From NCBI GenBank assembly GCA_002269645.1, contig NIVC01003689.1, forward strand, positions 1 to 64,000: 64,000 nucleotides of DNA, written 5' to 3'. Below, piece after piece: positions 11,601 through 58,683 of the stretch. Below the pieces are notes generated by a model that saw nothing but the letters and a program-made list of their open reading frames with translations, had not been told where the DNA came from and searched no databases. Each line of letters begins with the position of its first letter. Within the stretch, counting starts at the first letter, position 1. The position numbers and the translations under genes are program-made. This stretch comes from Macrostomum lignano (lineage: Eukaryota).

Positions 11601-14600
11601 CCAGATCTTCAGTTGCTGGGCCAGCCTTCCAGATCCTCAGTTGCTGGGCCAGTCTCCCAGATCCTCAGTTGCTCGGCCAGCCTCCCAGAACGTCGTCAAT
11701 ATTAACCCCCACACAGCCTCTGAACTCACTAACTACTAGCAACTTGCCAACCCCCTTTCCTTCACAGACAATGTACAGAGACTGGCTGTGCTCAGTAAAG
11801 TTCAACGTGTACGACATTAACGACTCCTTAACCCAAGTGAACCCCTGCTCCGAATGGTGCCAATCAGTTGAGACCGAATGTCCTTATTTGACCCCGTCTG
11901 ACGACTTCTCAAATGCCGGCGAACCAGTGTTTCTCTGTCACGGTGAGTTTTGCTGTTCATGCATAGGCGTTTCATTTGGCAACTGTCATTTTATGGTGCG
12001 ATACTTGTAGTGCAAGACGGCGCCAAAGCCACTGCAAGATGGCGCCAAAGCCACTGCAAGACGGCGCCAAAGCTAAAATTAAGTTGGAGCCAAAGCTACT
12101 GCAAAATAGCGCCAAAGCTACTGCAAGGTGGCGCCAAAGCTACTGCAAGGTGGCGCCAAAGCTACTGCAAGATAGCGCCAAAGCTACTGCAAGGTGGCAC
12201 CAAAGCTACGGCAAAATAGCGCCAAAGCTACTGCAAGATAGCGCCAAAGCTACTACAAGGTTGCGCCAAAGCTACTGCAAGGCGGCGCCAAAGCTACTGC
12301 AAGATAGCGCCAAAGCTACTGCAAGGTGGCGCCAAAGCTACTGCAAAATAGCGCCAAAGCTACTGCAAGGTGGCGCCAAAGCTACTGCAAAATAGCGCCA
12401 AAGCTACTGCAAGGTGGCGCTAAGCTACTGCAAGGCGGCGCCAAAGCTACTGCAAGATAGCGCCAAAGCTACTGCAAGGTGGCGCCAAAGCTACGGCAAA
12501 ATAGCGCCAAAGCTACTGCAAGGTGGCGCCAAAGCTACTGCAAAATAGCGCCAAAGCTACTAAAATTATTGCAACGCTTTTTTCGCAAGGAGGTTCCTGA
12601 GGCTTTTTTGCCAGTAAATTGGTGCTGCTGGGAACCACATGCCCCCTAGCGCAAAATTTCATGCAAAATGAAATTATACCTTGCCACTTGCAATGTTTAT
12701 TAAATAAAAAAACATTGGCTTTTAATGAGACCTTTCTAGTACCAACCCGACTGCTCACCATAGTGCCGCTCTGGGAAATTGCTACTCAAGCTGGCGGCAC
12801 TTAGGCCAGACTGAATATGCCTAAAAGCGGGTGTTTGTGTCAGCATGCCTGCCTGCCATGCCTGTCACTGTGTAAGCCTACCCAGGGATAGCGTAATTCG
12901 ATACTGTAATTAAGGCATGTTTTTGTTCCGCTTTGCAATTTTTATTCCCCCCATGGGAATATTGCGATTTTTTATCATTTCGTTTATATAGTTAATAGAG
13001 CAGCTTTGGGATTTTGGGAGTATGTTTTGAGATTGCTAAGTGTCGGTATTTGTAGGCGGTGTGCCAATGCTGAGCTATTGATCATAGAGTGACCATTCTG
13101 GTACGACAGTGACAATTCTCATATTGGAGCGACAATTCTTAGCATTGGAGTGACAATCCTTAGCATTGGAGTGACAATCCTTAGCATTGGAGTGACAATC
13201 CTTAGTATTGGAGTGACAATCCTTAGCATTGGAGTGACAATCCTTAGCATTGGAGTGACAATCCTTAGCATTGGAGTGACAATCCTTAGCATTGGAGTGA
13301 CAATCCTTAGCATTGGAGTGACAATCCTTAGTATTGGAGTGACAATCAGTATTGGAGTGACACCCTTAGCATTGGAGTGACAATCCTTAGCATTGGAGTG
13401 ACAATCCTTAGCATTGGAGTGACAATCAGTATTGGAGTGACACCCTTAGCATTAGAGTGACAATCCTTAGCATTGGAGTGACAATCCTTAACATTGGAGT
13501 GACAATCCTTAACATTGGAGTGACAATCCTTAGCATTGGAGTGACAATCCTTAGCATTGGAGTGACAATCCTTAGTATTGGAGTGACAATCAGTATTGGA
13601 GTGACACCCTTAGCATTGGAGTGACAATCCTTAGCATTGGAGTGACAATCCTTAACATTGGAGTGACAATCCTTAGCATTGGAGTGACAATCCTTAGCAT
13701 TGGAGTGACAATCCTTAGTATTGGAGTGACAATTCTTAGCATTGGAGTGACAATTCTTAGCATTGGAGTGACAATCCTTAGCATTAAAGTGACAATCATT
13801 AGCAATGGAGTGACAATACTTAGCATTGGAGTGACAATACTTAGCATTGGAGTGACAATCCTTAAAATTGGAGTGACAATGCTTAGCATTGAGTTCACAA
13901 TCCTTAGCATTGGAGTGACAATCCTTAGCATTGGAGTGACAAAAATCAGTATTGGAGTGACAATCAGTATTGGAGTGACAATCAGTATTGGAGTGACAAT
14001 CAGTATTGGAGTGACAAAAATCAGTATTGGAGTGACAATCAGTATTGGAGTGACAATCAGTATTGGAGTGACAATCAGTATTGGAGTGACAATCAGTATT
14101 GGAATGACAATCAGTATTGGAGTGACAATCAGTATTGGAGTGACAATCAGTATTGGACTGACAATCAGTATTGGAGTGACAATCAGTATTGGAGTGACAA
14201 TCAGTATTGGAGTGACAAAAATCAGTATTGGAGTGACAAAAATCAGTATTGGAGTGACAATCAGTGAAAACGCCCGGGAGTGATAACCCAAGCAGTGAAG
14301 TGACAATCCGAGAGTGCCAATTCCAACAGCACTATACTCACACCTACCCCCCTCTTGTTCTTGGCCCATTGCAGAGGACAGCTACAAGGGCACCAGAATG
14401 TCAGATCGGTGCACCGGGTACACTCAATGTTGTTGCTACGCACCTTCAAGTTCGAATCGGACTAATATCAAGATAATGTGCACATCACCAGCTTCCCTAG
14501 GCAGAAAGACCGCATCATCAGCCGCATCAGATTCTGATTTTAGTGTGGACTTTATTAATAACGCCAATTTAACCGATTCTAACAATGCTACTAATAGTAG

Positions 14601-16480: not shown

Positions 16481-16649
16481 CAGTCTGCCAAAAAAGCCTT
16501 TCAAATAGCTTTACTCTGTTCTCATCTATTTTATAATAATGATTCTTGCATGAGTCGATCTGTATGCTTCATCCGCAGTCTCCTGTTGATTCTCTGGGGT
16601 GACAGCTGAACCGAGCAGATTTTGTACTAAGAGAAAGAAATCGTTTTGC

Positions 16650-17054
16650 ATGGACCAGCCATCGGTAGCGGCCGGCGATTGGCCAGCCGCCAACGAGCAC
16701 GAGAACGAATACGAAGTTGAAAAGATTCTGCGGGTGAAAGGTCGGGGCCATACAATGCGCTATTTGATCAAATGGAAGGGCTTTGGGGACGATTGGAACA
16801 CGTGGGAGCCAAGGAGTAACCTGATTGGCTGCGAGGCTGCTCTGCAAGCGTTCACCAGTGAACAGCAGCAAAAGAAGCGGCAGCAGAAACGAAAAAATAA
16901 GAAACAGCCGCAGGCGGTGAGTTTTTGTGTCATCTCGTAGACAGACACTAAGACATACAGGCAGACAGTCAGACAGGCAGGCAGGCAGAGAGACAGGCAG
17001 GTAGACAGAGAGACAGACAGACAGGCAGACACTAAGACATACAGGCAGACAGAC

Positions 17055-17235: not shown

Positions 17236-20163
17236 GAGACAAATACAGGCAGACAGACAGACAGACAGACAGACAGGTCAATCTCATTATTTCGTTAATC
17301 CAAAACACATGCCGCCTCCTGTTAGGCGGAAGCACCTCAGACAGCGGTCGATTTTCCGAAAGAAGACCAACAGCAGCAGCAACAGGAGCAGCAGGAGCGG
17401 CAAAACAGCCAGTCGGACAGTCAGGGTCTGTTCAACAAATTCCGAAGCGCATCCGGCAGCTCTACTTTCACAGCAGTCGCATCCCATCCAGCTGTCGATG
17501 ATTCCGCCGCATCGCTCACAAATTTCTATTACAAATCCGGAGGCGAATTAGACAGATTCTTGGACTCCCTCTCGGCACTGGACCATTGCCCGACTGTTGC
17601 TTCTCTGCCCGACTGTCTGTCCTCTTCGCCTTCGAAAGCTTCTTCCAGGCTGATTGCGGCTGTAGAGGCCAACTCTCTGGGCGATTTGATTCGCCTGCTG
17701 CACTCGCCAGCTTCATCGGCTGCTGGCGCTTGCGATCTGAATTGGGCCGATGAGGCGCGGAATGGAGAAACGGCGCTGACTGCCGCTCTGAGGCAGGGCA
17801 ATGTGGCAGCAGTTCGGCTGCTGCTGCAGCACGGCTGTGCCGTCAACGCCTGGTGTCAGCTGCCTGCCGCATCGGCTTTGTCAGCTTCTTCATCCGGTGA
17901 TGCTGCTGGAAATGACCGGCAGCAGCAGCAATTCAAAGATCCCATAGTGGTTGCCAGGTGATTATCTTTCTTTCCTAGGTACATACGAGTGTACAGCGGC
18001 CCCTGACTTTATTTACCGTTATGCATGTACACTTCACTGTGGCTTGGGGGTTGGGCCTCAAACTGGGCGTTAATTGCACGAGCAGAGCCAAGCCAAGATT
18101 TTTGTTATTATGATACCACAATAGTCGCTCCTAACCCTAAGACGCGAAAAATAGCCTTCTTAGAATTTGGTTCCAGGTCATCCCCGGTTCTTAGAAATTG
18201 CACCTCCCCTTTCTTAGAAATCTCCCTCAATTTTTAGAAATCACCCCCGGTTATTAGAAATCACCCTCAGTTCTTAGAAATCACCCTCAGTTCTTAGAAA
18301 TCACCCTCAGTTCTTAGAAATCACCCTCAGTTCTTAGAAATCACCCTCAGTTCTTAGAAATCACCCTCAGTTCTTAGAAATCACCCTCAGTTCTTAGAAA
18401 TCACCCTCAGTTCTTAGAAATCACCCTCAGTTCTTAGAAATCACCCTCAGTTCTTAGAAATCACCCTCAGTTCTTAGAAATCACCCTCAGTTCTCAGAAA
18501 TCACCCTCAGTTCTTAGAAATCACCCTCAGTTCTTAGAAATCACCCTCAGTTCTTAGAAATCACCCTCAGTTCTTAGAAATCGCCCTTACCCATTTCTTG
18601 GAAATCACCCCAGTTCTTGGAAATTACCCCCGTTCTTAGAAATCGCCCTTACCCATTTCTTGGAAATCACCCCAGTTCTTGGAAAGTACCCCAGTTCTTA
18701 GAAATCGCCCTTACCCATTTCTTGGAAATCACCCCATTTCTTGGAAATCACCCCAGTTCTTGGAAATCACCCCAGTTCTTAGAAATCGCCCTTACCCATT
18801 TCTTGGAAATCACCCCATTTCTTGGAAATCACCCCATTTCTTGGAAATCACCCCAGTTCTTAGAAATCGCCCTTACCCATTTCTTGAAAATCACCCCAGT
18901 TCTTAGAAATTACCCCAGTTCTTAGAAATCGCCCTTACCCATTTCTTGGAAATCACCCCAGTTCTTAGAAATTACCCCAGTTCTTAGAAATCGCCCTTAC
19001 CCATTTCTTGGAAATCACCCCAGTTCTTAGAAATCGCCCTTACCAATTTCTTGGAAATCACCCCAGTTCTTGGAAATCACCCCAGTTCTTGGAAATCACC
19101 CCAGTTCTTGAAAATCACCCCAGTTCTTGGAAATCACCCCAGTTCTTGGAAATCACCCCAGTTCTTGGAAATCACCCCAGTTCTTGGAAATCACTCCAGT
19201 TCTTGGAAATCACCCCAGTTCTTGGAAATCACTCCAGTTCTTGGAAATCACCCCAGTTCTTGGAAATCACCCCAGTTCTTGGAAATCACCCCAGTTCTTG
19301 GAAATCACCCCAGTTCTTGGAAATCACCCCAGTTCTTGGAAATCACCCCAGTTCTTGGAAATCACTCCAGTTCTTGGAAATCACCCCAGTTCTTGGAAAT
19401 CACTCCAGTTCTTGGAAATCACCCCAGTTCTTGGAAATCACCCCAGTTCTTGGAAATCACCCCAGTTCTTGGAAATCACCCCAGTTCTTGGAAATCACCC
19501 CAGTTCTTGGAAATCACCCCAGTTCTTGGAAATCACCCCAGTTCTTGGAAATCACCCCAGTTCTTGGAAATCACCCCAGTTCTTGGAAATCACCCCAGTT
19601 CTTGGAAATCACCCCAGTTCTTGGAAATCACCCCAGTTCTTAGAATTCGCCTCCCCATTGTCACTCGCAGAAGCTGCCCACTGGCAGGCGAGCTGCTCTG
19701 CTTGCTGCAGCGTCACTGCGACGCCGTTTCGCAGGCTCTGGCCGACTGCGCCCAATCAGCTCTCGGTAGCTCAGCTCGGCTGCTCGCCCCAGTCGGCCGT
19801 TTGCACATTCTTCCCAGGCCTGGCCTGTCTGTTCAATTCGACATTGCCGATCGGCTGCCGTCGCTGCCTTGCGTACTGTTGCTAGGCAACGCCGTGTTCA
19901 ACACCGGAGCCGAAGCTACAGCGGCGCCGTTGGTTCGACTCCGGGGCAGGTGCTCAGTGCGAGAGGTTTGGCTGAACAACGTGCGCCAGATGCCGCTGAG
20001 TCAGGCCGGCTGTTTCATTTGCACCTGCGCCCCGCTCCGTGTCGGCTCCAACACTGTCGGCTTGGTGCCCAGCGGGTCGTTTCGGCTGCCAGCCGACGGC
20101 AGATTCCGGCTATTGGTTAGAGCGTACGAAGTGAAAGTGTTGGCCGAGAGTGGGGCTGCTTAG
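16650..20163 (+). CDS. MPHOSPH8: MPP8 (MPHOSPH8)-like protein: chromodomain + ankyrin repeats + MPP8 C-terminal domain, ~463 aa, 3 exons
   Basis: Exons 16650-16916 (gcg|gtgagt), 17326-17957 (ttag|, ag|gtgatt), 19671-20163 (cgcag|; alternative acceptor at 19644), phases 0 and 2 consistent, 1392 nt. Chromodomain YEVEKIL...YLIKWKGFGDDWNTWEPRSNL; ankyrin NGETALTAALRQGNVAAVRLLLQHGCAVN; C-terminus VRLRGRCSVREVWLNN...RLLVRAYEVKV parallels human MPP8 ARLCGPCSVQAVVLND...KLLIGAYRVQL (from memory). Confidence 0.85.
16938..17276. repeat. (ACAG)n microsatellite in MPP8-like intron 1
   Basis: Direct inspection. Confidence 0.95.
18180..19643. repeat. 19-20-bp minisatellite TTCTT(A/G)GAAATCACCC(C/T)CAG in MPP8-like intron 2
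   Basis: About 70 copies, ending 27 nt before the exon 3 acceptor. Confidence 0.95.
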
Positions 20164-20204: not shown

Positions 20205-23200
20205 GACAGACAGACACACAGACACACATAGAACATGTCTATGACACACAGACACACATAGAACATGGCTATGACACACAGACACACATAGAACATGTCT
20301 ATGACACACAGACACACAGAGAACATGTCTATGACACACAGACACACATAGAACATGGCTATGACACACAGACACACATAGAACATGGCTATGACACACA
20401 GACACACATAGAACATGGCTATGACACACAGACACACATATAACATGGCTATGACACACAGACACACATATAACATGTCTATGACACACAGACACACATA
20501 GAACATGTCTATGACACACAGACACACATAGAACATGTCTTTGACACACAGACACACATATAACATGTCTATGACACACAGACACACATAGAACATGTCT
20601 ATGACACACAGACACACATAGAACATGTCTATGACACACAGACACACATAGAACATGGCTATGACACACAGACACACATATAACATGGCTATGACACACA
20701 GACACACATAGAACATGTCTATGACACACAGACACACATAGAACATGGCTATGACACACAGACACACATAGAACATGGCTATGACACACAGACACACATA
20801 TAACATGGCTATGACACACAGACACACATAGAACATGTCTATGACACACAGACACACATATAACATGTCTATGACACACAGACACACATAGAACATGTCT
20901 ATGACACACAGACACACATAGAACATGTCTATGACACACAGACACACATATAACATGTCTATGACACACAGACACACATAGAACATGGCTATGACACACA
21001 GACACACATAGAACATGTCTATGACACACAGACACACATAGAACATGGCTATGACACACAGACACACATAGAACATGTCTATGACACACAGACACACATA
21101 TAACATGTCTATGACACACAGACACACATAGAACATGTCTATGACACACAGACACACAGAGAACATGTCTATGACACACAGACACACATAGAACATGTCT
21201 ATGACACACAGACACACATATAACATGTCTATGACACACAGACACACATAGAACATGGCTATGACACACAGACACACATAGAACATGTCTATGACACACA
21301 GACACACATAGAACATGTCTATGACACACAGACACACATAGAACATGTCTATGACACACAGACACACATAGAACATGTCTATGACACACAGACACACATA
21401 GAACATGTCTATGACACACAGACACACATAGAACATGTCTTTGACACACAGACACACATAGAACATGTCTATGACACACAGACACACATAGAACATGGCT
21501 ATGACACACAGACACACATGGAACATGTCTATGACACACAGACACACATAGAACATGTCTTTGACACACAGACACACATAGAACATGGCTATGACACACA
21601 GACACACATAGAACATGGCTATGACACACAGACACACATAGAAAATGTCTATGACACACAGACACACATAGAACATGTCTATGACACACAGACACACATA
21701 GAACATGTCTATGACACACAGACACACATAGAACATGTCTATGACACACAGACACACATAGAACATGTCTATGGACACACAGACACACATAGAACATGTC
21801 TATGACACACAGACACACATAGAAAATGTCTATGACACACAGACACACATAGAAAATGTCTATGACACACAGACACACATAGAACATGGCTATGACACAC
21901 AGACACACATAGAACATGTCTATGACACACAGACACACATAGAACATGTCTATGACACACAGACACACATAGAACATGTCTATGACACACAGACACACAT
22001 AGAACATGTCTTTGACACACAGACACACATAGAACATGTCTATGACACACAGACACACATAGAACATGGCTATGACACACAGACACACATGGAACATGTC
22101 TATGACACACAGGCACACATAGAACATGTCTTTGACACACAGACACACATAGAACATGGCTATGACACACAGACACACATAGAACATGGCTATGACACAC
22201 AGACACACATAGAACATGGCTATGACACACAGACACACATAGAACATGGCTATGACACACAGACACACATAGAACATGGCTATGACACACAGACACACAT
22301 AGAACATGGCTATGACACACAGACACACATAGAAAATGTCTATGACACACAGACACACATAGAACATGTCTATGACACACAGACACACATAGAACATGGC
22401 TATGACACACAGACACACATATAACATGTCTATGACACACAGACACACATAGAACATGTCTATGACACACAGACACACATAGAACATGTCTTTGACACAC
22501 AGACACACATAGAACATGTCTATGACACACAGACACACATAGAACATGGCTATGACACACAGACACACATGGAACATGTCTATGACACACAGGCACACAT
22601 AGAACATGTCTTTGACACACAGACACACATAGAACATGGCTATGACACACAGACACACATAGAACATGGCTATGACACACAGACACACATAGAACATGGC
22701 TATGACACACAGACACACATAGAACATGGCTATGACACACAGACACACATAGAACATGGCTATGACACACAGACACACATAGAACATGGCTATGACACAC
22801 AGACACACATAGAAATGTCTATGACACACAGACACACATAGAACATGTCTATGACACACAGACACACATAGAACATGTCTATGACACACAGACACACATA
22901 GAACATGTCTATGACACACAGACACACATATAACATGGCTATGACACACAGACACACATATAACATGTCTATGACACACAGACACACATAGAACATGTCT
23001 ATGACACACAGACACACATAGAACATGTCTATGACACACAGACACACATATAACATGTCTATGACACACAGACACACATAGAACATGTCTATGACACACA
23101 GACACACATAGAACATGTCTATGACACACAGACACACATAGAACATGTCTATGACACACAGACACACAGAGAACATGTCTATGACACACAGACACACATA

Positions 23201-25385
23201 GAACATGGCTATGACACACAGACACACATAGAACATGGCTATGACACACAGACACACATAGAACATGTCTATGACACACAGACACACATATAACATGGCT
23301 ATGACACACAGACACACATAGAACATGTCTATGACACACAGACACACATATAACATGTCTATGACACACAGACACACATAGAACATGTCTATGACACACA
23401 GACACACATAGAACATGTCTATGACACACAGACACACATAGAACATGTCTATGACACACAGACACACATAGAACATGTCTATGACACACAGACACACATA
23501 GAACATGTCTATGACACACAGACACACATAGAACATGGCTATGACACACAGACACACATAGAACATGTCTATGACACACAGACACACATATAACATGTCT
23601 ATGACACACAGACACACATAGAACATGTCTATGACACACAGACACACAGAGAACATGTCTATGACACACAGACACACATAGAACATGTCTATGACACACA
23701 GACACACATAGAACATGTCTATGACACACAGACACACATAGAACATGTCTATGACACACAGACACACATAGAACATGTCTATGACACACAGACACACATA
23801 GAACATGTCTATGACACACAGACACACATAGAACATGTCTATGACACACAGACACACATAGAACATGTCTATGACACACAGACACACATAGAACATGTCT
23901 ATGACACACAGACACACATAGAACATGTCTATGACACACAGACACACATAGAAATGTCTATGACACACAGACACACATAGAACATGTCTATGACACACAG
24001 ACACACATAGAACATGTCTATGACACACAGACACACATAGAACATGTCTATGACACACAGACACACATAGAACATGTCTTGACACACAGACACACATAGA
24101 ACATGTCTATGACACACAGACACACATAGAACATGGCTATGACACACAGACACACATAGAACATGTCTATGACACACAGACACACATAGAACATGTCTAT
24201 GACACACAGACACACATAGAACATGGCTATGACACACAGACACACATAGAACATGGCTATGACACACAGACACACATAGAACATGGCTATGACACACAGA
24301 CACACATAGAACATGGCTATGACACACAGACACACATAGAACATGGCTATGACACACAGACACACATAGAACATGGCTATGACACACAGACACACATAGA
24401 AATGTCTATGACACACAGACACACATAGAACATGTCTATGACACACAGACACACATAGAACATGTCTATGACACACAGACACACATAGAACATGTCTATG
24501 ACACACAGACACACATAGAACATGTCTATGACACACAGACACACATAGAACATGTCTATGACACACAGACACACATAGAACATGGCTATGACACACAGAC
24601 ACACATATAACATGGCTATGACACACAGACACACAAAGAACATGGCTATGACACACAGACACACATAGAACATGGCTATGACACACAGACACACATAGAA
24701 CATGGCTATGACACACAGACACACATAGAACATGTCTATGACACACAGACACACATAGAACATGTCTATGACACACAGACACACATAGAACATGTCTATG
24801 ACACACAGACACACATAGAACATGTCTATGACACACAGACACACATAGAACATGTCTATGACACACAGACACACATAGAACATGTCTATGACACACAGAC
24901 ACACATAGAAATGTCTATGACACACAGACACACATAGAACATGTCTATGACACACAGACACACATAGAACATGTCTATGACACACAGACACACATAGAAC
25001 ATGGCTATGACACACAGACACACATATAACATGGCTATGACACACAGACACACAAAGAACATGGCTATGACACACAGACACACATAGAACATGGCTATGA
25101 CACACAGACACACATAGAACATGGCTATGGACACACAGACACACATAGAACATGTCTATGACACACAGACACACATAGAACATGTCTATGACACACAGAC
25201 ACACATAGAACATGTCTATGACACACAGACACACATAGAACATGTCTATGACACACAGACACACATAGAAAATGTCTATGACACACAGACACACATAGAA
25301 CATGGCTATGACACACAGACACACATAGAACATGGCTATGGACACACAGACACACATAGAACATGGCTATGACACACAGACACAT
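20205..25385. repeat. 30-bp satellite ATGACACACAGACACACATAGAACATGTCT (~5.2 kb)
   Basis: About 170 copies; source of the artefactual 1252-aa and 540-aa minus-strand ORFs. Confidence 0.97.
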
Positions 25386-27095: not shown

Positions 27096-27200
27096 AAGAA
27101 CGTGTATAGGGATCTATAGACTATTGACTATCAAATAAAGTAATTAGATTTCCAGTATGATTCATATTTAATTCCAATTTTCTGTCGTCGAAACTCACCA

Positions 27201-30200
27201 ATGCAGTCCGACGCCAGTCGCGAAGACTTGTTCCGAGCCCTATTCAGAGCCAAGTCTCTCCTAGTTGAATGCGACCAGCTTCATCGAGCCTATGCTAGAC
27301 AGTGCCGCCTGGTCAGTTCGCTGGAAGCCGAACTGGCCAGAGCTAGAGAATCGGCTGATCGTTGCTCAGCATTGAAAGCTGCCCTGTCATTAACCGAAGC
27401 TAACCTGCAGCGAACTCGGCACGAATTAGCGGAGGCTCGACTAGAATTGAGTCAGTTGAAGCAACCGCAACGTCGCGCGTCTAAACGAATAAGCAGCCGC
27501 GCCACCGATCCTGGGGTGTCAGCAGTTCAACCTAAGCGTCCTAGGCGTGTTGATTTGGACGCCACTTCTTCTAGCGATGAGGATAATGATGAGGATAAAC
27601 CGCAACCTCAGGCGGAAGAATCCACCAGGCCTAAGAGCTCCAATCCTCACAGTGAAGCTCAAATACATGTACAAGAGCCTCTGTGCTCCTCCAATCAATC
27701 CGTTGTGATTGTTTCCGATGAAACAGCAAAGACTGCTGCTAATAGAAAGTTGTCTATAGAGCAGTGCCTGTCTTCTGTTAATCAGCGTCCAAGAAGAACG
27801 CTTCAAATGTACGACAAAGATTGCAGCCGTAGAAATAAACATCAGCGCTACAGACAGAGTCTTTCAGCTAGTTGCGGTGCTGACTTCTCTAAGTCTAAAA
27901 CATCCCAGTCTCCAAAAACTGGCGTTATTCGGCGAAGGCATTCCCACCGGGTAGATCTGGATGCTACATCCAGCGAAGAGGAAGGCAATGGAAGCGGCGC
28001 TGCTAAAAGCAAAAGACGGCGTCCATTAGAGCCTCCTTTGCCGATCAAGTCGTTTGCCTATAACACGAGGTCCAATGCGAAACTTTCGTCTGGCATTATT
28101 GAAATAAGTGCAGAATGTCGAGATGAAGCATCGTCTGATGTCACTATTGTCCTGCAGGATGAGGATGCAAATGGCACTGCAACAGATAAGCCTATTGTTG
28201 TGCAGAATGCAGATGGCACTGCAACAGATAAGCCTATTGTTGTGCAGAATGCAGATGGCACTGCAACAGATAAGCCTATTGTTGTGCAGAATGCAGATGG
28301 CACTGCAACAGATGAGCCCATTGTGCAGAATGCAGATGGCACTGCAACAGATGAGCCCATTGTGCAGAATGCAGATGGCACTGCAACAGATGAGCCCATT
28401 GTGCAGAATGCAGATGGCACTGCAACAGATGAGCCCATTGTGCAGAATGCAGATGGCACTGTAACAGATAAGCGCATTGTGCAGAATGCAGATGGCACTG
28501 CAACAGATAAGCGCATTGTGCAGGATGCAGAAGGCACTGCAACAGATGAGTCCATTGTGCAGGATGCAGATGGCACTGCAACAGACGAGCCCATTGTGCA
28601 GGATGCAGATGGCACTGCAACAGATGAGCCCATTGTGCAGGATGCGGATGGCAATGCAACAGACGAGCCCATTGTGCAGGATGCAGATGGCACTGCAACA
28701 GATGAGCCCATTGTGCAGGATGCAGATGGCACTGCAACAGATCAACCCATTGTGCAGGATGCAGATGGCACTGCAACAGATGAGCCCATTGTGCAGGATG
28801 CAGATGGCACTGCAACAGATCAACCCATTGTGCAGGATGCAGATGGCACTGCAACAGATCAACCCATTGTTTTGCAGAATGCAGATGGCACTGCAACAGA
28901 TGACCCTATTGTTTTGCAGGATGCACATGGCACTGCAACAGATGAGCCTATTGTGCAGGATGCAGATGGCACCACGACAGATGAGCCCATTGTTGAGCAG
29001 AATGAGGATTCAGATAGTGTTACATCAGACGAGGAATCATCTGTTTTACATGTTGCTGTAGAAGATTCTAAGGAATCTGCTGTTATGGAAGAAGCTAAGG
29101 AACCATCTGATTCGTTTGTTGGCCCAGTGGAAGAAGCTAAGGAACCATCTGATTCGTTTGTTGGCCCAGTGGAAGAAGCTAAGGAACCATCTGATTCGTT
29201 TGTTGGCCCAGTGGAAGAAGCTAAGGAACCATCTGATTCGTTTGTAGGCCCAGTGGAAGAAGCTAAGGAACCATCTGATTCGTTTGTTGTCGCAGTGGAA
29301 GAAGCTAAGGAACCATCTGATTCGTTTGTTGTCGCAGTGGAAGAAGCTAAGAAATCATCTGATTCGTTTGTTGTCGCAGTGGAAGAAGCTAAGAAATCAT
29401 CTGATTCGTTTGTTGTCGCAGTGGAAGAAGCTAAGAAATCATCTGATTCGTTTGTTGTCGCAGTGGAAGAAGCTAAGAAATCATCTGATTCGTTTGTTGT
29501 CGCAGTGGAAGAAGCTAAGGAACCATCTGTTAATGATGCAATGGAAGACTCAAATGAATCGTTTAGTGTGACGGTTGTGGAAGATTCACTGCACAATGAG
29601 AATAGAAAATTCATTGAACCTTCTATTAGCGAAGATTTCACATCTGAAAAAGATGTCACACTTCAAAATGCTAACAATACTACTGAGCTAAAAGTTGAAC
29701 ATGCGAAGAAAATTGATCCAGCAGAAGATCCTGTCGAATCGAGACTTTCCATAGCAGAAGTAGCAACAGATTCGACTCAAACGGTTGTAGAAAGACAAGA
29801 AAGTGTAGTCCGAGTCAAAACAACTGCATCAGCTTCATCGAGTGCCGCTTCTAGCGATCCTCATCATCATCGAATTGCCAATTGTTCCACAACAAATAGC
29901 GAAGACTTCGACAATGCTTCGTGCAATCTGGCAATTGCCGATTTTAACGAAGACGACGAATTTGACAAAGCCTCGGTGGCAAGTTCAATTAATAATCGAC
30001 AGGTTTTGCCGTCGCTCTTGTCGCCGATCAGATCGCCCGACTCCGAGACGGTCGACCAGCCTGCGGCGCCCAGCGGCGAATCCGCCAGCCGATTGAAACG
30101 GCGCTCTTTTCCTGTCGACGATTTTGTTCGCGATTTGAATACTTCGTCCGCGTTTCGAGCGGTTGCTAGCGCAATACCGGACGGTTGGCCTCTCGATCCA

Positions 30201-30725
30201 GTGATAGATTGGACATTCTTTTTGTCCCACAGGATCGACATGCTCGAATCTTTACCAGCCGAACCGTTAAGCTATTTAGACCGGATTAATGCCGGGATAG
30301 CCGCTATTATTGATAATAGAGACGATAATAACAGCGCCGATTGTTGCCTTGACGACGACGAATTAGATTATCTGCTTCAGCCGGGTTCAATTGCCGAACT
30401 GTGCCGCGGAGGCGGCGTTCAACCGCCTTGGATTGTCAGCCGGTTGATTCCATTTCTTGAGCGGCTGTTAGATAAAACAGCTGATCGAAACAAAGACTCT
30501 AGAATTGGTTCGTTGCGCCGTCGCTGCCTGGCCTGCCTAATGATTGTCGGGCCGCTGTCGCCTCAGGCGGCCGCCCGATCCGCCGTTCGCTGGATCAACG
30601 CCGACCAGCCGGGGCCTGGCGACGTTATTGTTGGCCAAGTGAAACGGTTTCTAAAAATGAGACCGGCCCTGTTGAAAACTCTGTTCGTTACTGAGAAATT
30701 TCCAGTTTGCCTTCTGGCTGCTTGA
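27201..30725 (+). CDS. Intronless 1174-aa protein: N-terminal coiled coil, acidic disordered middle with coding tandem repeats, helical C-terminal domain; possible ICE1 (little elongation complex subunit 1)
   Basis: Uninterrupted ATG-to-TGA ORF with complex sequence at both ends. Coding repeats of 13-14 aa (DADGTATDEPIVQ) and 14 aa (EEAKEPSDSFVGPV). N-terminal ALxxxKxxxxxxDxLxxxYxxxC spacing matches the recalled human ICE1 N-terminus. The ORF itself is high confidence; the ICE1 identity is tentative. Confidence 0.75.
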   Translation: MQSDASREDLFRALFRAKSLLVECDQLHRAYARQCRLVSSLEAELARARESADRCSALKAALSLTEANLQRTRHELAEARLELSQLKQPQRRASKRISSRATDPGVSAVQPKRPRRVDLDATSSSDEDNDEDKPQPQAEESTRPKSSNPHSEAQIHVQEPLCSSNQSVVIVSDETAKTAANRKLSIEQCLSSVNQRPRRTLQMYDKDCSRRNKHQRYRQSLSASCGADFSKSKTSQSPKTGVIRRRHSHRVDLDATSSEEEGNGSGAAKSKRRRPLEPPLPIKSFAYNTRSNAKLSSGIIEISAECRDEASSDVTIVLQDEDANGTATDKPIVVQNADGTATDKPIVVQNADGTATDKPIVVQNADGTATDEPIVQNADGTATDEPIVQNADGTATDEPIVQNADGTATDEPIVQNADGTVTDKRIVQNADGTATDKRIVQDAEGTATDESIVQDADGTATDEPIVQDADGTATDEPIVQDADGNATDEPIVQDADGTATDEPIVQDADGTATDQPIVQDADGTATDEPIVQDADGTATDQPIVQDADGTATDQPIVLQNADGTATDDPIVLQDAHGTATDEPIVQDADGTTTDEPIVEQNEDSDSVTSDEESSVLHVAVEDSKESAVMEEAKEPSDSFVGPVEEAKEPSDSFVGPVEEAKEPSDSFVGPVEEAKEPSDSFVGPVEEAKEPSDSFVVAVEEAKEPSDSFVVAVEEAKKSSDSFVVAVEEAKKSSDSFVVAVEEAKKSSDSFVVAVEEAKKSSDSFVVAVEEAKEPSVNDAMEDSNESFSVTVVEDSLHNENRKFIEPSISEDFTSEKDVTLQNANNTTELKVEHAKKIDPAEDPVESRLSIAEVATDSTQTVVERQESVVRVKTTASASSSAASSDPHHHRIANCSTTNSEDFDNASCNLAIADFNEDDEFDKASVASSINNRQVLPSLLSPIRSPDSETVDQPAAPSGESASRLKRRSFPVDDFVRDLNTSSAFRAVASAIPDGWPLDPVIDWTFFLSHRIDMLESLPAEPLSYLDRINAGIAAIIDNRDDNNSADCCLDDDELDYLLQPGSIAELCRGGGVQPPWIVSRLIPFLERLLDKTADRNKDSRIGSLRRRCLACLMIVGPLSPQAAARSAVRWINADQPGPGDVIVGQVKRFLKMRPALLKTLFVTEKFPVCLLAA

Positions 30726-31850: not shown

Positions 31851-32289
31851 TTGTGTCCTTCTATCCTGATTTTCGTTGAGTCCTGACTGTCTCTATCCTG
31901 GTTGTGTATGTGTGTGTCCTAGTTGCGTTTCAGTTTGTGTACCAGCTGTTTCGGGTTGTCTTTGTTTTTTAGGTTTTCTTTATTTCTTCGACTTTAGTGT
32001 CTTTGTATCCTTTGTGTCTATTTCTACCTTATACTACCGGTACATGTCTGTTTGCCAGATGGTCAATCCATAGAAAACAAGACCGATCACGCCTTCATTC
32101 GACAATAAAGTTGTAAATATAAATATACTTCAATTTTTTATTTTTGCTAGGCTGTTCCGTTGGCAGGTGGTTATGTGCAGAAAAAACATGTACTCGATTT
32201 ATTGTGCTTTAAGTGCTGTGCTGACTCATTCATTTGTTGAAAACAGCTGCTGCACTCTGGTGCGCAAGCGGTTGCAAACTGGGACATCG

Positions 32290-33265
32290 CCAGCCTCCCA
32301 GATCCTCAGTTGCTGGGCCAGCCTCCCAGATCCTCAGTTGCTGGGCCAGCCTCCCAGATCCACAGTTGCTGGGCCAGCCTCCCAGATCCTCAGTTGCTGG
32401 GCCAGCCTCCCAGATCCTCAGTTGCTGGGCCAGCCTCCCAGATCCTCAGTTGCTGGGCCAGCCTCCCAGATCCACAGTTGCTGGGCCAGCCTCCCAGGTC
32501 CTCAGTTGCTGGGCCAGCCTCCCAGATCCTCAGTTGCTGGGCCAGCCTCCCAGATCCTCAGTTGCTGGGCCAGCCTCCCAGATCCTCAGTTGCTGGGCCA
32601 GCCTCCCAGATCCACAGTTGCTGGGCCAGCCTCCCAGGTCCTCAGTTGCTGGGCCAGCCTCCCAGATCCACAGTTGCTGGGCCAGCCTCCCAGGTCCTCA
32701 GTTGCTGGGCCAGCCTCCCAGGTCCTCAGTTGCTGGGCCAGCCTCTCAGATCTTCAGTTGCTGGGCCAGCCTCCCAGAGTGTCAGTTGCTGGGCCAGCCT
32801 CCCAGATCCTCAGTTGCTGGGCCAGCCTCCCAGATCCTCAGTTGCTGGGCCAGCCTCTCAGATCTTCAGTTGCTGGGCCAGCCTCTCAGATCCTTAGTTG
32901 CTGGGCCAGCCTCTCAGATCCTTAGTTGCTGGGCCAGCCTCTCAGATCCTGAGTTGCTGGGCCAGCCTCCCAGATCCTCAGTTGCTGGGCCAGCCTCCCA
33001 GATCCTCAGTTGCTGGGCCAGCCTCCCAGAGTGTCAGTTGCTGGGCCAGCCTCCCAGGTCTTCAGTTGCTGGGCCAGCCTCCCAGATCCTCAGTTGCTGG
33101 GCCAGCCTCCCAGATCCTCAGTTGCTGGGCCAGCCTCCCAGATCCTCAGTTGCTGGGCCAGTCTTCCAAATCCTCAGTTGCTGGGCCAGCCTCCCAGATC
33201 CTTGGTTGCTGGGCCACCAGTCTCCCAAGTCCTCAGGTGCTGAGCCAGCCTCCCAGATCTTTAGT
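32290..33265. repeat. 28-bp minisatellite GCCTCCCAGATCCTCAGTTGCTGGGCCA (locus 2)
   Basis: Same unit and orientation as 10862-11690. Confidence 0.95.
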
Positions 33266-33679
33266 TGCTGGGTTACGTGGCTTCCCGGACGTTTCAGCTG
33301 TTCTTATATTCGTATTCGGCCTTGTGCATACCAAATTTGTACTTTAGCTGTAAAATGGGGCGTCTGCAGAACAGATAAAGTGAATCAAAAACTTCTCAGG
33401 GGTACTTGCAGCCCCCCCCCCCCGGAAGTCACAAGCAGGTTGAAATATCCGGTCGAAAAACTAATAGAATGAACGATTTGTCAGTTAAATGTTTTCAAAG
33501 CAAAGAAGCAATAAATACCAAATTGTCAAAAATTCCAAAAGCAGTTTTTATTTTTATTTTCAGTCAATTAGTTAAATTACGTGCGTAGTTAGTTAGTAGT
33601 TAGTTAAATTAATTAGTTAGTTCAATTAGTTAAAGTCACCAGAATTAGTTCTACAAGCCATTGCCGTTGCATTGATGCT

Positions 33680-35790: not shown

Positions 35791-36591
35791 TCTGTCTGTA
35801 CTTGAAAATACAAATACCTGTCACATTTGCAGCCTTCTAAGTTCTTAATTAAATAGCTTTTAAAATAGTAAAATAGAGCATGAGTGAGATGAAGTATACA
35901 TCATCTAGAGCTCACCCCTGCTAGGTACAGATATTAGCTGTTTGCATATAAAGGCCATGTGAGTCCCCGCACATGCAACCAATAATTATTTGGCAGAGTT
36001 TTAGCCCTGTGGCTGTACTTCGCTCATGTTTATTTTTACCCCCGGAGATTTTATGCCATTTTTGCCTTGCGTTGTCCGGGACTGGAGTTCGCAGAGCAGA
36101 GTCACACTTTCGTTTGATTTACTTTTTCACTTAATAGACAATCTACTCTACTATTAGTAGAAAAGAAAGTAATATAGAAGTAATTTGATTATATACTTGT
36201 TTCAACGAGTATCGCTAGGATTGGCCAGTGGCTCTGATTCGTCACGCATGGGAATCCATCGAATTTCGGGATTTGGAAGCGTTTGACATGCAGACAGGCG
36301 AATCATTTCAGATTTTAAAACATTCATTTTCATGGCCACTGTTCGATTCCTGCTCCGCGAATACTCCCTCCACCGGTCTCTAGTGGCACAATAAGCGGAC
36401 AGAACTACGCGTAGCTGACTGGCTGACTGGATTTTGACTTGTTCATTAAATTTTGCTGCTATAAAATCTGCGTTTTTTCGCACTCGCCGAATCTTTCACT
36501 GCAGTTTAGCATAAGCAAACTTGAGTCTACAAATCATAATTAGAATATTCTTTGTGGCTAACTAAAACGCTTATTCTTAGCAGAGAAAAAA

Positions 36592-38188
36592 ATGCAAATG
36601 AGGCTCTGCATAATAACTAAACTGATTGTCGCCTCGGCTACCATTGCCGCTGTGGCTGTGCTGATGGCGGCCTCGGCCGCTGCAAGCTTTGACAACCCTG
36701 AGCAGGAGGGTGAGCGATTGAATTGAAATTGGTGCATGCCTTGTCCGTTTGCTAAAATGCAATTCTGTTGCAGACTGTTTAGCATTGAGCCAACACCCCA
36801 CCCTCAGTTCATTCAGCCAACACCCCAACCCTCAGTTCATTCAGCCAACACCCCACCTAGTTCATTCAGCCAACACCCCAACCCCCAGTTCATTGAGCCA
36901 AAACCTCAATCCCAGTTCATTCAACCAACACCCCACCCAGTTCATTGAGCCAACGCCCCAACTCTAGATCATTCAGCCAACACCCCAACTCTAGTTCATT
37001 GAGCCAACACCCCAACTCTAGTTCATTGAGCCAACACCCCAACTCTAGTTCATTGAGCCAACACCCCACCCAGTTCATTCAGCCAACACCCCAACTCTAG
37101 TTCATTGAGCCAACACCCCAACTCTAGTTCATTGAGCCAACACCCCAACTCTAGTTCATTGAGCCAACACCCCAACTCTAGTTCATTGAGCCAACACCCC
37201 AACTCTAGTTCATTGAGCCAACACCCAACCCAGTTCATTGAGCCAACACCCCACCCAGTTCATTGAGCCAACACCCCACCCAGTTCATTCAGCCAACACC
37301 CAACCCAGTTCATTGAGCCAACACCCCACCCAGTTCATTGAGCCAACACCCCACCCAGTTCATTCAGCCAACACTAGCCAACTCTAGTACATTGAGCCAA
37401 CACCCAACCCAGTTCATTGAGCCAACACCCCAACTCTAGTACATTGAGCCAACACCCAACCCAGTTCATTGAGCCAACACCCCAACTCTAGTTCATTGAG
37501 CCAACACCCCAACTCTAGTTCATTGAGCCAACACCCCAACCCCAGTTCATTGAGCCAAAACCTCAACCCCAGTTTATTCAGCCAACACCCCAACCTCAGT
37601 TCATTCAACCAACACCCAACCCAGTTCATTGAGCCAACACCCAACCCAGTTCATTGAGCCAACACCCCAACCCCCAGTTCATTGAGCCAACACCCAACCC
37701 AGTTCATTGAGCCAACACCCAACCCAGTTCATTGAGCCAACACCCCAACCCCCAGTTCATTGAGCCAACACCCCACGCCATCAACCCTGCTTTTATCAGT
37801 AGCGCCATTGACTTCTACCACCTATCCTGTTATCAGTTGCACTAACACGCTCTCCCCTAATTAACTACATGTACAAAACTTATCAATTCCTTTTAGTACA
37901 TATAGGTGGTGTAGAGATATTCCTTTACTTTAACAAGCAACCCATTTTCGTCTCCAACTCTGCCATTCTCTCAAAAACACTCCAGACCGATCATCCACGC
38001 CTGTGATACCCGACTACTCCAACCTGCCGCTTCATCAAGAGGCTGTTTACAAGCGCGGCATCGAGCTGCCTGGAAATATTCATTGTTGCGTCAACGGCAT
38101 CGCCGGATGCTGTCGACGAAAACGCAGAATCCGCCGACGCCGAAGTTTCGACGATCAGTTGGAGTTCGACGCGAACAAACTGCCGTGA
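36592..38188 (+). CDS. Secreted cysteine-rich prepropeptide (106 aa); predicted mature peptide GIELPGNIHCCVNGIAGCC
   Basis: Exon 1 36592-36709 encodes signal peptide MQMRLCIITKLIVASATIAAVAVLMAASAAA, donor g|gtgagc (phase 1). Exon 2 37986-38188, acceptor ctccag| (phase 1 matches). KR precedes and RRKRRIRRRR follows a CC-X6-CC peptide (38057-38113). Confidence 0.8.
36785..37775. repeat. 24-29-bp minisatellite CAGTTCATTGAGCCAACACCCCA(ACTCT) filling the peptide-gene intron
   Basis: Direct inspection. Confidence 0.93.
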
Positions 38189-38447
38189 GCTTATAATTAG
38201 CTGCCGATAAATGAATGAAACAAACTCAAGCGCTGATCAAAATTTTAAAATGGCCGTGAGAAAAATTATTTTGTTTGTTAAATAAACTGTGACTTGGGAA
38301 ATATATGATTGCGCCGCCCATCCGGTCAAGATGTTTATGATTTGGTCATCTGCAAGGATTTATTAATAAATGGATTTAAAGAGTTTTTTAGTCAATATTT
38401 TTATGAAGTTCAAATAATGAGTATTTTTATGAGTTATCCATTCTCCA

Positions 38448-57144: not shown

Positions 57145-58683
57145 CTAAACTGGCAATAAATCTTCCAGACAGGACATCACAGCGGTGGCGTGACTCGCCA
57201 GCATCGAGGCCCACAGTGTCACCTCGCCATTCACCGTGAAATCGTCGCCTTGTGACTGCTCGCCTTCACGGTCTTTAGACGAGCACAAACCAGCAAGCCA
57301 AGCGTCACTTGATGGTCGACAGCCTTCATGGCTACTACTAGCAGTAGCATCAGCAGCATTCGCCGATTGTTTAACAATTAGTTTAGAAGCCAGCTCGGGA
57401 ACTGTGCCAGCAGAGTTAGGCAGCAAATTCAACTCTTCAATAACCATCCAGATGTCCCACTTAGCAACTAAAGAAGCCGTGACTAAATCCGATCGGACAG
57501 AATCGCCAAAGTAGGCAATCTTTCTGGATTGAGTTTTATCATCACATTGTCCAAGAAATTTCCATTCAAATTCTTCCGCACAACCGCTGATGTAAGCTTT
57601 ACCCCGACCGAATGGAAGGCGTTCGAAGCTTTCGTAGCTGCTGTAGTAACTAGCCGAGCTTGAATAATACGATTTGGACTTTTTCATAAAAAAGTTCGGC
57701 TTCCCAGCCTCCAACAGGCAGGCGTCGAATAAATCCGGCCAGTCCTGACCCAGAATGTGCTCAAGATGTCTGGCAGCGAACTGAGCCTCAGAGGATGATA
57801 ATAAAAAGACATAAATGCCGCGTTGGCGAAGCTGTTTGAGCAGCACTCGAACTCCGGAGGTCACCGGGCACAGGTAAGCGCTGGGATTAGCTAATACATA
57901 TTTAAAATAAGCGCCATCATCTGAGTAGACGTGAAGCAAAGCTGAGTAGCAATCCTGCCAAAGGCTGCTGCAGTCAGTCAGTGGGGTGGTTCGATTCTCT
58001 TCTGCCAAGTCCACCTGTTGATGAAGCCAACTTGCTTTTAGTTGAATATCAGCACGTATATGTAGCATCATACTGTACTGCACTGTACTGTACTGTACTG
58101 CAACCCACCTGGCCATTTTCAGTTTTTTGTGCTCACAAAGCCCCAAATGAATGTGGCTGCGCAACCAGAGGTGGTCCTGGAGCCCCCCCCTTCCCCAACG
58201 CACCAATTTAGCGAATATCAAACTGCCAGGCAAGTCGTAGTGAGTATCCTGAAATCGATAGCGACCATCTCGTTCGTGTCGATAGCCGCTATTGAGAACG
58301 GCTTGAGCAAACGGCGGCCGACCGTCTGGCGGATAAGCTAATTTAGCGTCCAACTGTTTGCTGCCGTGACAAACTCTCAATGCTGCACCTGTGGGCGACA
58401 TCAAAAGCAGATTGCCGCCTATTTTGTCTAAAATAGCGGCCCTACTCATTAAGCCACACTCAATTGGCGATGACCAGTCAAGACTGCGCAGATGATCGGG
58501 ATAGCCGCGATGCTTAACTAAATAGTCTGCCAATTGAACGTAAACTAGACTGACCAGATTGCGCAACTGATAACGGCCCAGCGTGAGATCGATGTCGAAA
58601 CCGACTGCGTCGTAGTCAAACAGACGCTCCATATTTATTTGGTGTTGTCTGACTAACCGACTAAATGGACGGAGTCGGTGCAT
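57145..58683 (-). CDS. NT5DC1: HAD-superfamily 5'-nucleotidase domain protein (NT5DC1-like), ~449 aa, 2 exons
   Basis: Motif I GFDIDLTLGRY; later AGKPNFF and YFGDSVRSDL. Exons 58683-58204 and 58014-57145; in-frame 189-nt intron (ttg|GTGCGT...CAACAG|gtg) whose removal restores FAKLVDL. Arg-rich N-terminus resembles a mitochondrial presequence. Confidence 0.88.
   Translation of the reverse strand: MHRLRPFSRLVRQHQINMERLFDYDAVGFDIDLTLGRYQLRNLVSLVYVQLADYLVKHRGYPDHLRSLDWSSPIECGLMSRAAILDKIGGNLLLMSPTGAALRVCHGSKQLDAKLAYPPDGRPPFAQAVLNSGYRHERDGRYRFQDTHYDLPGSLIFAKLVRWGRGGLQDHLWLRSHIHLGLCEHKKLKMARWVAVQYSTVQYSMMLHIRADIQLKASWLHQQVDLAEENRTTPLTDCSSLWQDCYSALLHVYSDDGAYFKYVLANPSAYLCPVTSGVRVLLKQLRQRGIYVFLLSSSEAQFAARHLEHILGQDWPDLFDACLLEAGKPNFFMKKSKSYYSSSASYYSSYESFERLPFGRGKAYISGCAEEFEWKFLGQCDDKTQSRKIAYFGDSVRSDLVTASLVAKWDIWMVIEELNLLPNSAGTVPELASKLIVKQSANAADATASSSHEGCRPSSDAWLAGLCSSKDREGEQSQGDDFTVNGEVTLWASMLASHATAVMSCLEDLLPV

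Follow-up and report, generated by a model that had tools for sequence, protein, structure and literature searches.

The described systems closest to the gene reported here are the prohormone genes of flatworms and, on account of a shared cysteine spacing, the T-superfamily conotoxins of cone snails. The gene, Mlig010892.g2, lies in the first 64 kb of contig NIVC01003689.1 of the flatworm Macrostomum lignano (assembly GCA_002269645.1, Mlig_3_7); this whole stretch of 64,000 nucleotides is referred to as the window, and its coordinates are those of the record. Planarians have the convertase PC2, which is needed for prohormone processing, and planarian prohormone genes such as spp, npp and npy encode a signal peptide and basic sites around a short conserved peptide, with many of these genes being lineage-restricted and without homologues outside flatworms (PMC2953531). 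It is the signal sequence that defines a conotoxin superfamily, and framework V of the T-superfamily has the form CC-(4 to 6 residues)-CC with pairing I-III and II-IV (PMC4278219). The T-superfamily genes have three exons and place the toxin at the C-terminus of the precursor (PMC3862624).

The spliced product of the window gene is a protein of 106 residues, MQMRLCIITKLIVASATIAAVAVLMAASAAASFDNPEQEDRSSTPVIPDYSNLPLHQEAVYKRGIELPGNIHCCVNGIAGCCRRKRRIRRRRSFDDQLEFDANKLP followed by the stop, in which a predicted signal peptide, an acidic pro-region, a KR site, a 19-residue core with four cysteines, a polybasic run and a tail follow one another. This layout had been proposed from a sequence-only reading of the window and is borne out by the translation. 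We hold with moderate confidence that the gene encodes a secretory prepropeptide and that its processed two-disulfide peptide would act as an endogenous neuropeptide- or hormone-like signal, and not as a venom. The signal peptide would direct the protein into the endoplasmic reticulum (ER) and then be removed, and the four core cysteines would form two disulfides in the ER. A dibasic-specific PC2-like convertase would then cut after Lys62-Arg63 and within the RRKRR/RRRR run, and trimming of the basic residues by a carboxypeptidase would release a hydrophobic, mildly acidic and non-amidated peptide of 19 residues, GIELPGNIHCCVNGIAGCC. We infer signal cleavage, convertase processing, the disulfides, secretion and the signalling role from the features of the precursor.

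Similar to the flatworm prohormone genes (PMC2953531), the window gene combines a predicted signal with basic sites around a short conserved peptide, a dependence on a PC2-type convertase would be expected, and a distribution restricted to one lineage is a property of many of those genes as well. Unlike them, the window precursor has no similarity outside M. lignano in the collections searched, and its peptide carries four cysteines as two adjacent pairs. The single copy of the peptide, the lack of a C-terminal Gly for amidation and the very long Arg runs also set the precursor apart from these genes.

Conservation between the window gene and a divergent paralogue

An exhaustive phmmer search of 1.84 billion representative sequences retrieved the 115-residue M. 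lignano protein Mlig027086 (E = 3.2e-8). This paralogue is present in three genomic copies, g1-g3, and is 43-51% identical to the window protein (BLASTP 8e-14 pairwise). All copies of the window gene, as well as Mlig027086, have two exons and one intron, and the intron position is common to both paralogues, in phase 1 within an Asp codon just past the signal. We found that the KR site and the RR following the core are invariant between the two, and that the core follows the family pattern G[IV]EL[PA]G[ND][IM][HY]CCVNGI[AP]GCC. The paralogue core, GVELAGDMYCCVNGIPGCC, is identical to the window core at 13/19 residues, including all four cysteines. Recovery at E = 3.2e-8 of an independent paralogue built in the same way places the architecture of the window protein beyond chance. 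The sequence-only reading had made its case depend on the conservation of the four cysteines and the basic sites in relatives, and both are conserved in this divergent paralogue.

We assessed selective constraint by comparing the window gene with Mlig027086, region by region. The nonsynonymous divergence (dN) of the 19-residue core was 0.15, and that of the KR site, core and basic residues taken together was 0.18, in both cases with a synonymous divergence (dS) of ~1.3-1.5, near saturation. The corresponding dN values were 0.51 for the signal peptide and 0.62 for the tail, where dS was again near saturation, and 0.79 for the pro-region, where dS was saturated. At nonsynonymous sites the core thus evolved ~4x more slowly than the remainder of the protein (dN 0.15-0.18 versus 0.65 outside the core; p = 0.0003-0.0005, with Fisher p = 0.0003 for the value of 0.15). 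It was noted that 9/19 identical core codons differ synonymously between the two genes, which rules out gene conversion as the source of the core identity and indicates that purifying selection on the peptide maintains it. The basic sites are conserved and the peptide between them has changed less than any other part of the precursor, and a conserved short peptide between conserved basic sites in a drifting precursor is, at the level of sequence, the classic signature expected of a processed bioactive peptide.

This comparison also bears on whether the gene model is a spurious open reading frame (ORF), called by TransDecoder on a transcript that yields no functional protein. With its small size, the protein lacks a Pfam domain and relatives beyond one genome, and its predicted structure is of low confidence, all of which would fit such an artefact. 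We nevertheless consider it highly improbable, because the two old paralogue groups have kept the frame, intron phase, signal, cleavage sites and four cysteines despite near-saturated synonymous sites, and because all six genomic copies, counted across both groups, have intact ORFs.

No relatives outside M. lignano were found, the phmmer search included, in collections that hold few flatworm sequences, and searches with the protein as query and with the family profile (k-mer and HMMER) returned M. lignano matches only. A scan of JGI metagenomes with back-translated patterns gave 406 pattern matches, of which 0 were confirmed, and a degenerate DNA pattern for CCVNGI[AP]GCC gave 0 matches. Pfam holds no family for the window protein, and PDB sequences gave no match to it. 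The earlier statement that the peptide cannot be placed in a known family therefore holds. As judged from these searches, the family appears to be small and is so far seen in M. lignano only. We class the window gene broadly among the convertase-processed disulfide-peptide precursors, as a new member confined, so far, to one species. We tentatively suggest, in addition, that at least two ancient paralogues make up an endogenous signalling-peptide family of Macrostomum's own, built on a CC-X6-CC scaffold and independent of the framework V toxins, and that the second of them bears additional cysteine-rich modules, with CSCC, RRR and CCLAC in this order and a final Gly.

Likeness to framework V conotoxins and other peptide systems

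Because of its paired cysteines, the peptide had been likened to conotoxins in the sequence-only reading, and we compared the two in their mature peptides, precursors and genes. The window segment CCVNGIAGCC and its counterpart CCVNGIPGCC in the paralogue both have a 6-residue loop and so conform to framework V spacing. As in T-superfamily conotoxins such as TxVA and Tx5.11, the mature peptide would be small, 10-20 residues in length and hydrophobic or acidic, and the precursor likewise runs in the order signal, pro-region, KR and peptide. A phase-1 intron near the end of the signal is a further likeness, although it carries little weight since this is a general property of secreted-protein genes.

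The differences concern the precursor and the gene as a whole. A profile of four published T precursors (PMC3862624) compared with the family alignment gave an hhalign probability of 4.1%, and pairwise BLASTP against Tx5.11 was not significant at 15.8 bits (E = 0.049, one comparison). The window signal is not of the MRCL/MLCL type, so that the signal, by which the superfamilies are defined, sets the protein outside this one. The gene has two exons where theirs have three, and the peptide is internal, being followed by the polybasic run and a tail of 14-43 residues, whereas the conotoxin ends its precursor. The pattern of conservation is also reversed, with a conserved core and a diverged signal, and the source is a flatworm as opposed to a cone snail. 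Of the conotoxin-like architecture that had been claimed, the CC-X6-CC spacing stands, while the signal, the exon organisation and the place of the peptide within the precursor do not agree. Judged on these comparisons, the likeness to framework V conotoxins is best described as convergence only.

The main alternative to an endogenous signal is that the same two-disulfide peptide is an exocrine gland product, whether a toxin or defence substance, a seminal-fluid peptide or a pheromone, that acts on other organisms or on mates. Its CC-X6-CC spacing equals that of conotoxin framework V (PMC4278219), and the peptide is non-amidated and occurs once per precursor. The family was confined to M. lignano in every search, as is typical for secretory genes of glands and reproduction, and such genes reportedly evolve fast in Macrostomum. 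Conotoxins, however, combine a conserved signal with a hypervariable toxin, and here the core is the slowest-evolving part while the signal and pro-region have diverged, which is the reverse. The absence of homology to T-superfamily precursors speaks against this alternative as well. The gene identifiers did not appear in the covered parts of the reproductive-gene tables, which is a weak point since the tables were covered in part. Cultured M. lignano feeds on diatoms, and given this diet a venom directed at prey would have no obvious use. We therefore regard an exocrine role as rather unlikely, and the venom or gland effector offered as one option in the sequence-only reading is disfavoured, as no part of the protein is better conserved than the mature core. 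A signal for an endogenous receptor is favoured over such an effector because strong constraint is confined to the core, while the signal peptide has diverged. This pattern is better suited to a ligand that co-evolves with a receptor of the worm itself than to the product of an arms race.

Membership in the insulin/relaxin family was also considered. The start of the core, GIELPGNIHCC after KR, recalls how the A chain of vertebrate insulin begins. Unlike insulin and relaxin, however, the window precursor has no B chain with its two cysteines upstream, and its core reads CC-X6-CC with four cysteines, not six, in contrast to the CC-X3-C-X8-C of the A chain. Pfam gave no insulin match even at E <= 10, and membership was rejected.

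Several observations weigh against the reading as an endogenous signal. No expression or peptidomic record turned up, with the supplements covered in part. The lack of an amidation signal and the single peptide copy are both less typical of flatworm neuropeptides. Runs of 5-6 Arg are unusual for neuropeptide processing sites and may be retained or have a different function. A wider distribution is seen for many signalling peptides, and no relatives outside M. lignano were found, in collections poor in flatworms. AlphaFold2, run on a 4-sequence alignment, was uninformative: the mean predicted local distance difference test score (pLDDT) was 50, only a signal helix at residues 3-31 was modelled, and the core had a pLDDT <50. 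Finally, the near-identical genomic copies of the window gene show no significant constraint, with exon 2 differing by 1.0% and the non-repeat flanks by 3.7% in pairwise alignment (p = 0.065), in a comparison that is underpowered and too shallow.

If the suggested Macrostomum family of signalling peptides is real, the gene would represent a class of neuropeptide or hormone that is new for flatworms, in the only flatworm with stable transgenesis. Should the 19-residue peptide be made, the signalling peptides catalogued for flatworms, which are few, would gain an undescribed disulfide-peptide family, and the transgenesis, RNA interference and transparency available in M. lignano make its cell type and function directly testable. 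It would further be a clean example of a CC-Xn-CC scaffold outside venoms, which bears on how frequently such mini-scaffolds evolve independently. The significance is modest, given a short gene that is species-restricted on present evidence, and would lie mainly with flatworm neurobiologists and peptide chemists.

Predicted parts of the precursor

The hydrophobic stretch at residues 4-31 of the window protein reaches a maximum 9-residue Kyte-Doolittle mean of 2.87. It ends in ASAAAS, which offers several AxA-type positions, and cleavage after any of residues 28-32 is compatible with the -3/-1 rule. The 31-residue signal peptide proposed in the sequence-only reading is consistent with the hydrophobic N-terminus and the small residues at -3 and -1, and the length of 31 is one of several allowed. 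R4 and K10 precede the hydrophobic segment and an acidic stretch follows it; from these flanking charges and the positive-inside rule, the C-terminal part of the protein is predicted to lie in the lumen.

An N-terminal segment of this kind could instead be an uncleaved signal anchor, in which case the product would be a small type II membrane protein. The window stretch (~4-31) is longer than a typical signal h-region, and the UniProt entry A0A1I8HXG2 bears the automatic label "Transmembrane protein". Against this, the signal of the paralogue is short and canonical (~19-20 residues, ending ALSA/A, as compared with ~28-32 in the window protein), and the extra length in the window protein is a 9-residue insertion relative to Mlig027086. 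The window stretch itself ends in the several possible cleavage positions given above, and the 202-residue UniProt entry is an older read-through model. A membrane anchor is therefore considered quite improbable.

Neither the window gene nor the paralogue has an Arg at P4 of the KR site. In view of established convertase specificity, the site is therefore taken to be dibasic, of the PC1/PC2 type, and not a furin consensus. The four cysteines of the core are the only ones after the signal peptide, and there are zero cysteines upstream of KR. The predicted peptide GIELPGNIHCCVNGIAGCC has a predicted isoelectric point of ~5.2, a grand average of hydropathicity of +0.86 and no C-terminal Gly for amidation.

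Downstream of the core, the window gene encodes RRKRR-I-RRRR, and Mlig027086 has RRRRRR, a 19-residue spacer and RRR. As the two basic clusters of the paralogue are separated by 19 residues and those of the window protein by one Ile, we read the window run as two processing sites, in which the lone Ile may be a collapsed spacer. It is also conceivable that the Arg run is kept, and that the core together with RRKRRIRRRR forms a cationic peptide (net charge ~+8) that is membrane-active or cell-entering, for example antimicrobial, with an acidic tail that neutralises it in the precursor. In both paralogues at least 5 consecutive basic residues stand right after the core, which exceeds the need of a cleavage site, and the window tail SFDDQLEFDANKLP is indeed acidic. 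The tail of the paralogue, however, lacks this acidic character and has more Cys and RRR sites, so that the idea of a neutralising pro-piece is not transferable to Mlig027086. Arg runs are themselves excellent convertase substrates according to established knowledge, and the number and arrangement of the basic residues differ between the paralogues (RRKRR-I-RRRR versus RRRRRR), whereas the core is constrained. A retained cationic run is accordingly held to be improbable, and we keep to the reading of the run as processing sites.

It was noted that the tail of Mlig027086 (gene at locus L004, 5001-5901) has six more cysteines, with AACSCC and RRR followed by SALSSPSPCCLACRQLAHQLG, and ends in Gly. 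This suggests that it may give rise to further processed or disulfide-linked peptides, possibly with amidation.

Gene model, genomic copies and surroundings

The coding parts of the two exons, of 118 and 203 nt, join in phase to 321 nt across an intron with GT/AG ends (Table 1), and the resulting protein matches GenBank PAA50230.1 (hypothetical protein BOX15_Mlig010892g2) from end to end with 100% identity. The GenBank entry is annotated at exactly 36592-38188. The two-exon, in-phase splice proposed from the sequence alone is therefore confirmed, while the description of the gene as hidden was wrong, since the exact model was already part of an RNA-seq-derived annotation. The GenBank annotation of Mlig_3_7 was built from StringTie/TACO RNA-seq assemblies and the mapped de novo transcriptome, with coding sequences called by TransDecoder, and is not ab initio (PMC5730564). 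Because the annotation derives from RNA-seq assemblies, the 36709/37986 junction has indirect transcript support. Further in-frame acceptors exist at 37938 and 38040, and the RNA-seq-based annotation takes 37986. It had also been remarked that the ORF list misses exon 1. This is correct at the usual length cut-off, below which this ORF of 44 residues falls, and exon 1 appears once the cut-off is lowered.

Mlig010892.g2 is thus a transcribed, already annotated and uncharacterised M. lignano gene, deposited as a hypothetical protein and with no discussion found in the searchable literature. Neither the core-peptide sequence nor a catalogue of Macrostomum prohormones or peptides turned up in the literature searches. 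The identifiers Mlig010892, Mlig031427 and Mlig027086 are absent from M. lignano supplements and full text, an absence that carries no weight as the supplements were covered in part only. UniProt A0A1I8HXG2, which comes from an older assembly, contains a 104-residue precursor, overruns its stop and extends into upstream sequence; the model looks like a gene-prediction artefact.

Table 1. Coordinates of the features of the window gene.
Feature	Position	Strand	Remarks
Candidate TATA box, TATAAAA	36460-36466	+	read from sequence; 132 nt upstream of first ATG
Exon 1, coding part	36592-36709	+	donor AGG/GTGAGC; start codon(s), signal peptide, 8 pro-region residues, Asp40 base 1
Signal peptide, predicted	36592-36684	+	residues 1-31 if cleavage after AAA; hydrophobic residues 4-31
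Intron, single, phase 1	36710-37985	+	1276 nt, GT...AG; interrupts Asp40 codon
Intronic 27-bp minisatellite	36783-37776	+	37.7 copies; Tandem Repeats Finder
Exon 2, coding part	37986-38188	+	acceptor CACTCCAG/AC (CTCCAG/); pro-region remainder, KR, core peptide, polybasic run, tail, stop (TGA at 38186-38188)
Lys62-Arg63, predicted N-terminal convertase site	38051-38056	+	invariant in paralogue
Predicted mature peptide GIELPGNIHCCVNGIAGCC	38057-38113	+	19 residues, CC-X6-CC; monoisotopic mass 1867.78 Da with two disulfides
Polybasic run RRKRR-I-RRRR, predicted C-terminal processing site(s)	38114-38143	+	
C-terminal tail SFDDQLEFDANKLP	38144-38185	+	acidic; poorly conserved; K-to-Q difference between genomic copies
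AATAAA polyadenylation signal, putative use	38281-38286	+	93 nt past stop codon

Two further copies of the gene were found on NIVC01003244.1 and NIVC01000023.1, annotated as Mlig010892g1 and Mlig031427g1, with a product of 104 residues. They are virtually identical to each other, and their regions are collinear with the window locus. The M. lignano genome is recently polyploid with known redundancy (PMC5730564), which the extra near-identical copies fit. Compared with the window copy, they start at its second ATG, have 3 different residues where the signal begins, carry Gln for one Lys of the tail and show 3 synonymous changes. Within 36585-36600, the window copy has an extra upstream ATG at 36592 (MQM...), adjoining an indel in an A-run, and in both homeologous copies the first codon corresponds to 36598 (MKLW...); the true start of the window gene may for this reason be M3 (36598). 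In the homeologous copy at locus L002, the TATAAAA block is nearly identical and the AATAAA block identical, and the former is a putative promoter element of the window gene. A first MAFFT estimate of 9% flank against 1% exon 2 divergence between near-identical copies was rejected as an artefact of repeat alignment.

The sequence-only reading was right that the intron is filled by a minisatellite, though this is ordinary for this genome. The 18-mer core of the 27-bp unit occurs 36 times and, within the window, only in this intron. We determined that the window (1-64000) has 28 high-scoring minisatellite arrays with periods of 4-303 bp, which amount to ~25.4 kb or ~40% of its length. The intronic minisatellite, as one of these 28 arrays, is not specific to the window gene. 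Its copy number varies from one genomic copy to another, and the introns of the other two copies are 1111 and 1110 nt long compared with 1276 nt in the window copy. The intron of Mlig027086 contains two unrelated arrays with 16-bp and 11-bp units.

Across the window, almost every long ORF of the six frames is a translated repeat from these arrays. A 28-bp unit, AGCCTCCCAGATCCTCAGTTGCTGGGCC, forms two arrays ~21 kb apart (10862-11689 and 32289-33272), and locus L002 has a much longer array of the same unit upstream of its gene copy. A single 5.2-kb array at 20213-25384 consists of 172 copies of a 30-bp unit with 97% identity. The only other annotated gene within 10 kb (27192-30725, + strand) encodes 1097 residues with no Pfam domain, and its coding sequence includes two tandem arrays, one of 39-bp units (28162-28993) and one of 42-bp units (29086-29529). 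An ORF of 512 residues on the minus strand (57145-58683) has a 5'-nucleotidase family domain (PF05761, E = 1.2e-37). On the plus strand, an ORF with a chromodomain (16599-16940; PF00385, E = 1.9e-14) precedes one with ankyrin repeats (17560-17961), and the two are probably exons of one gene with repeats between them.

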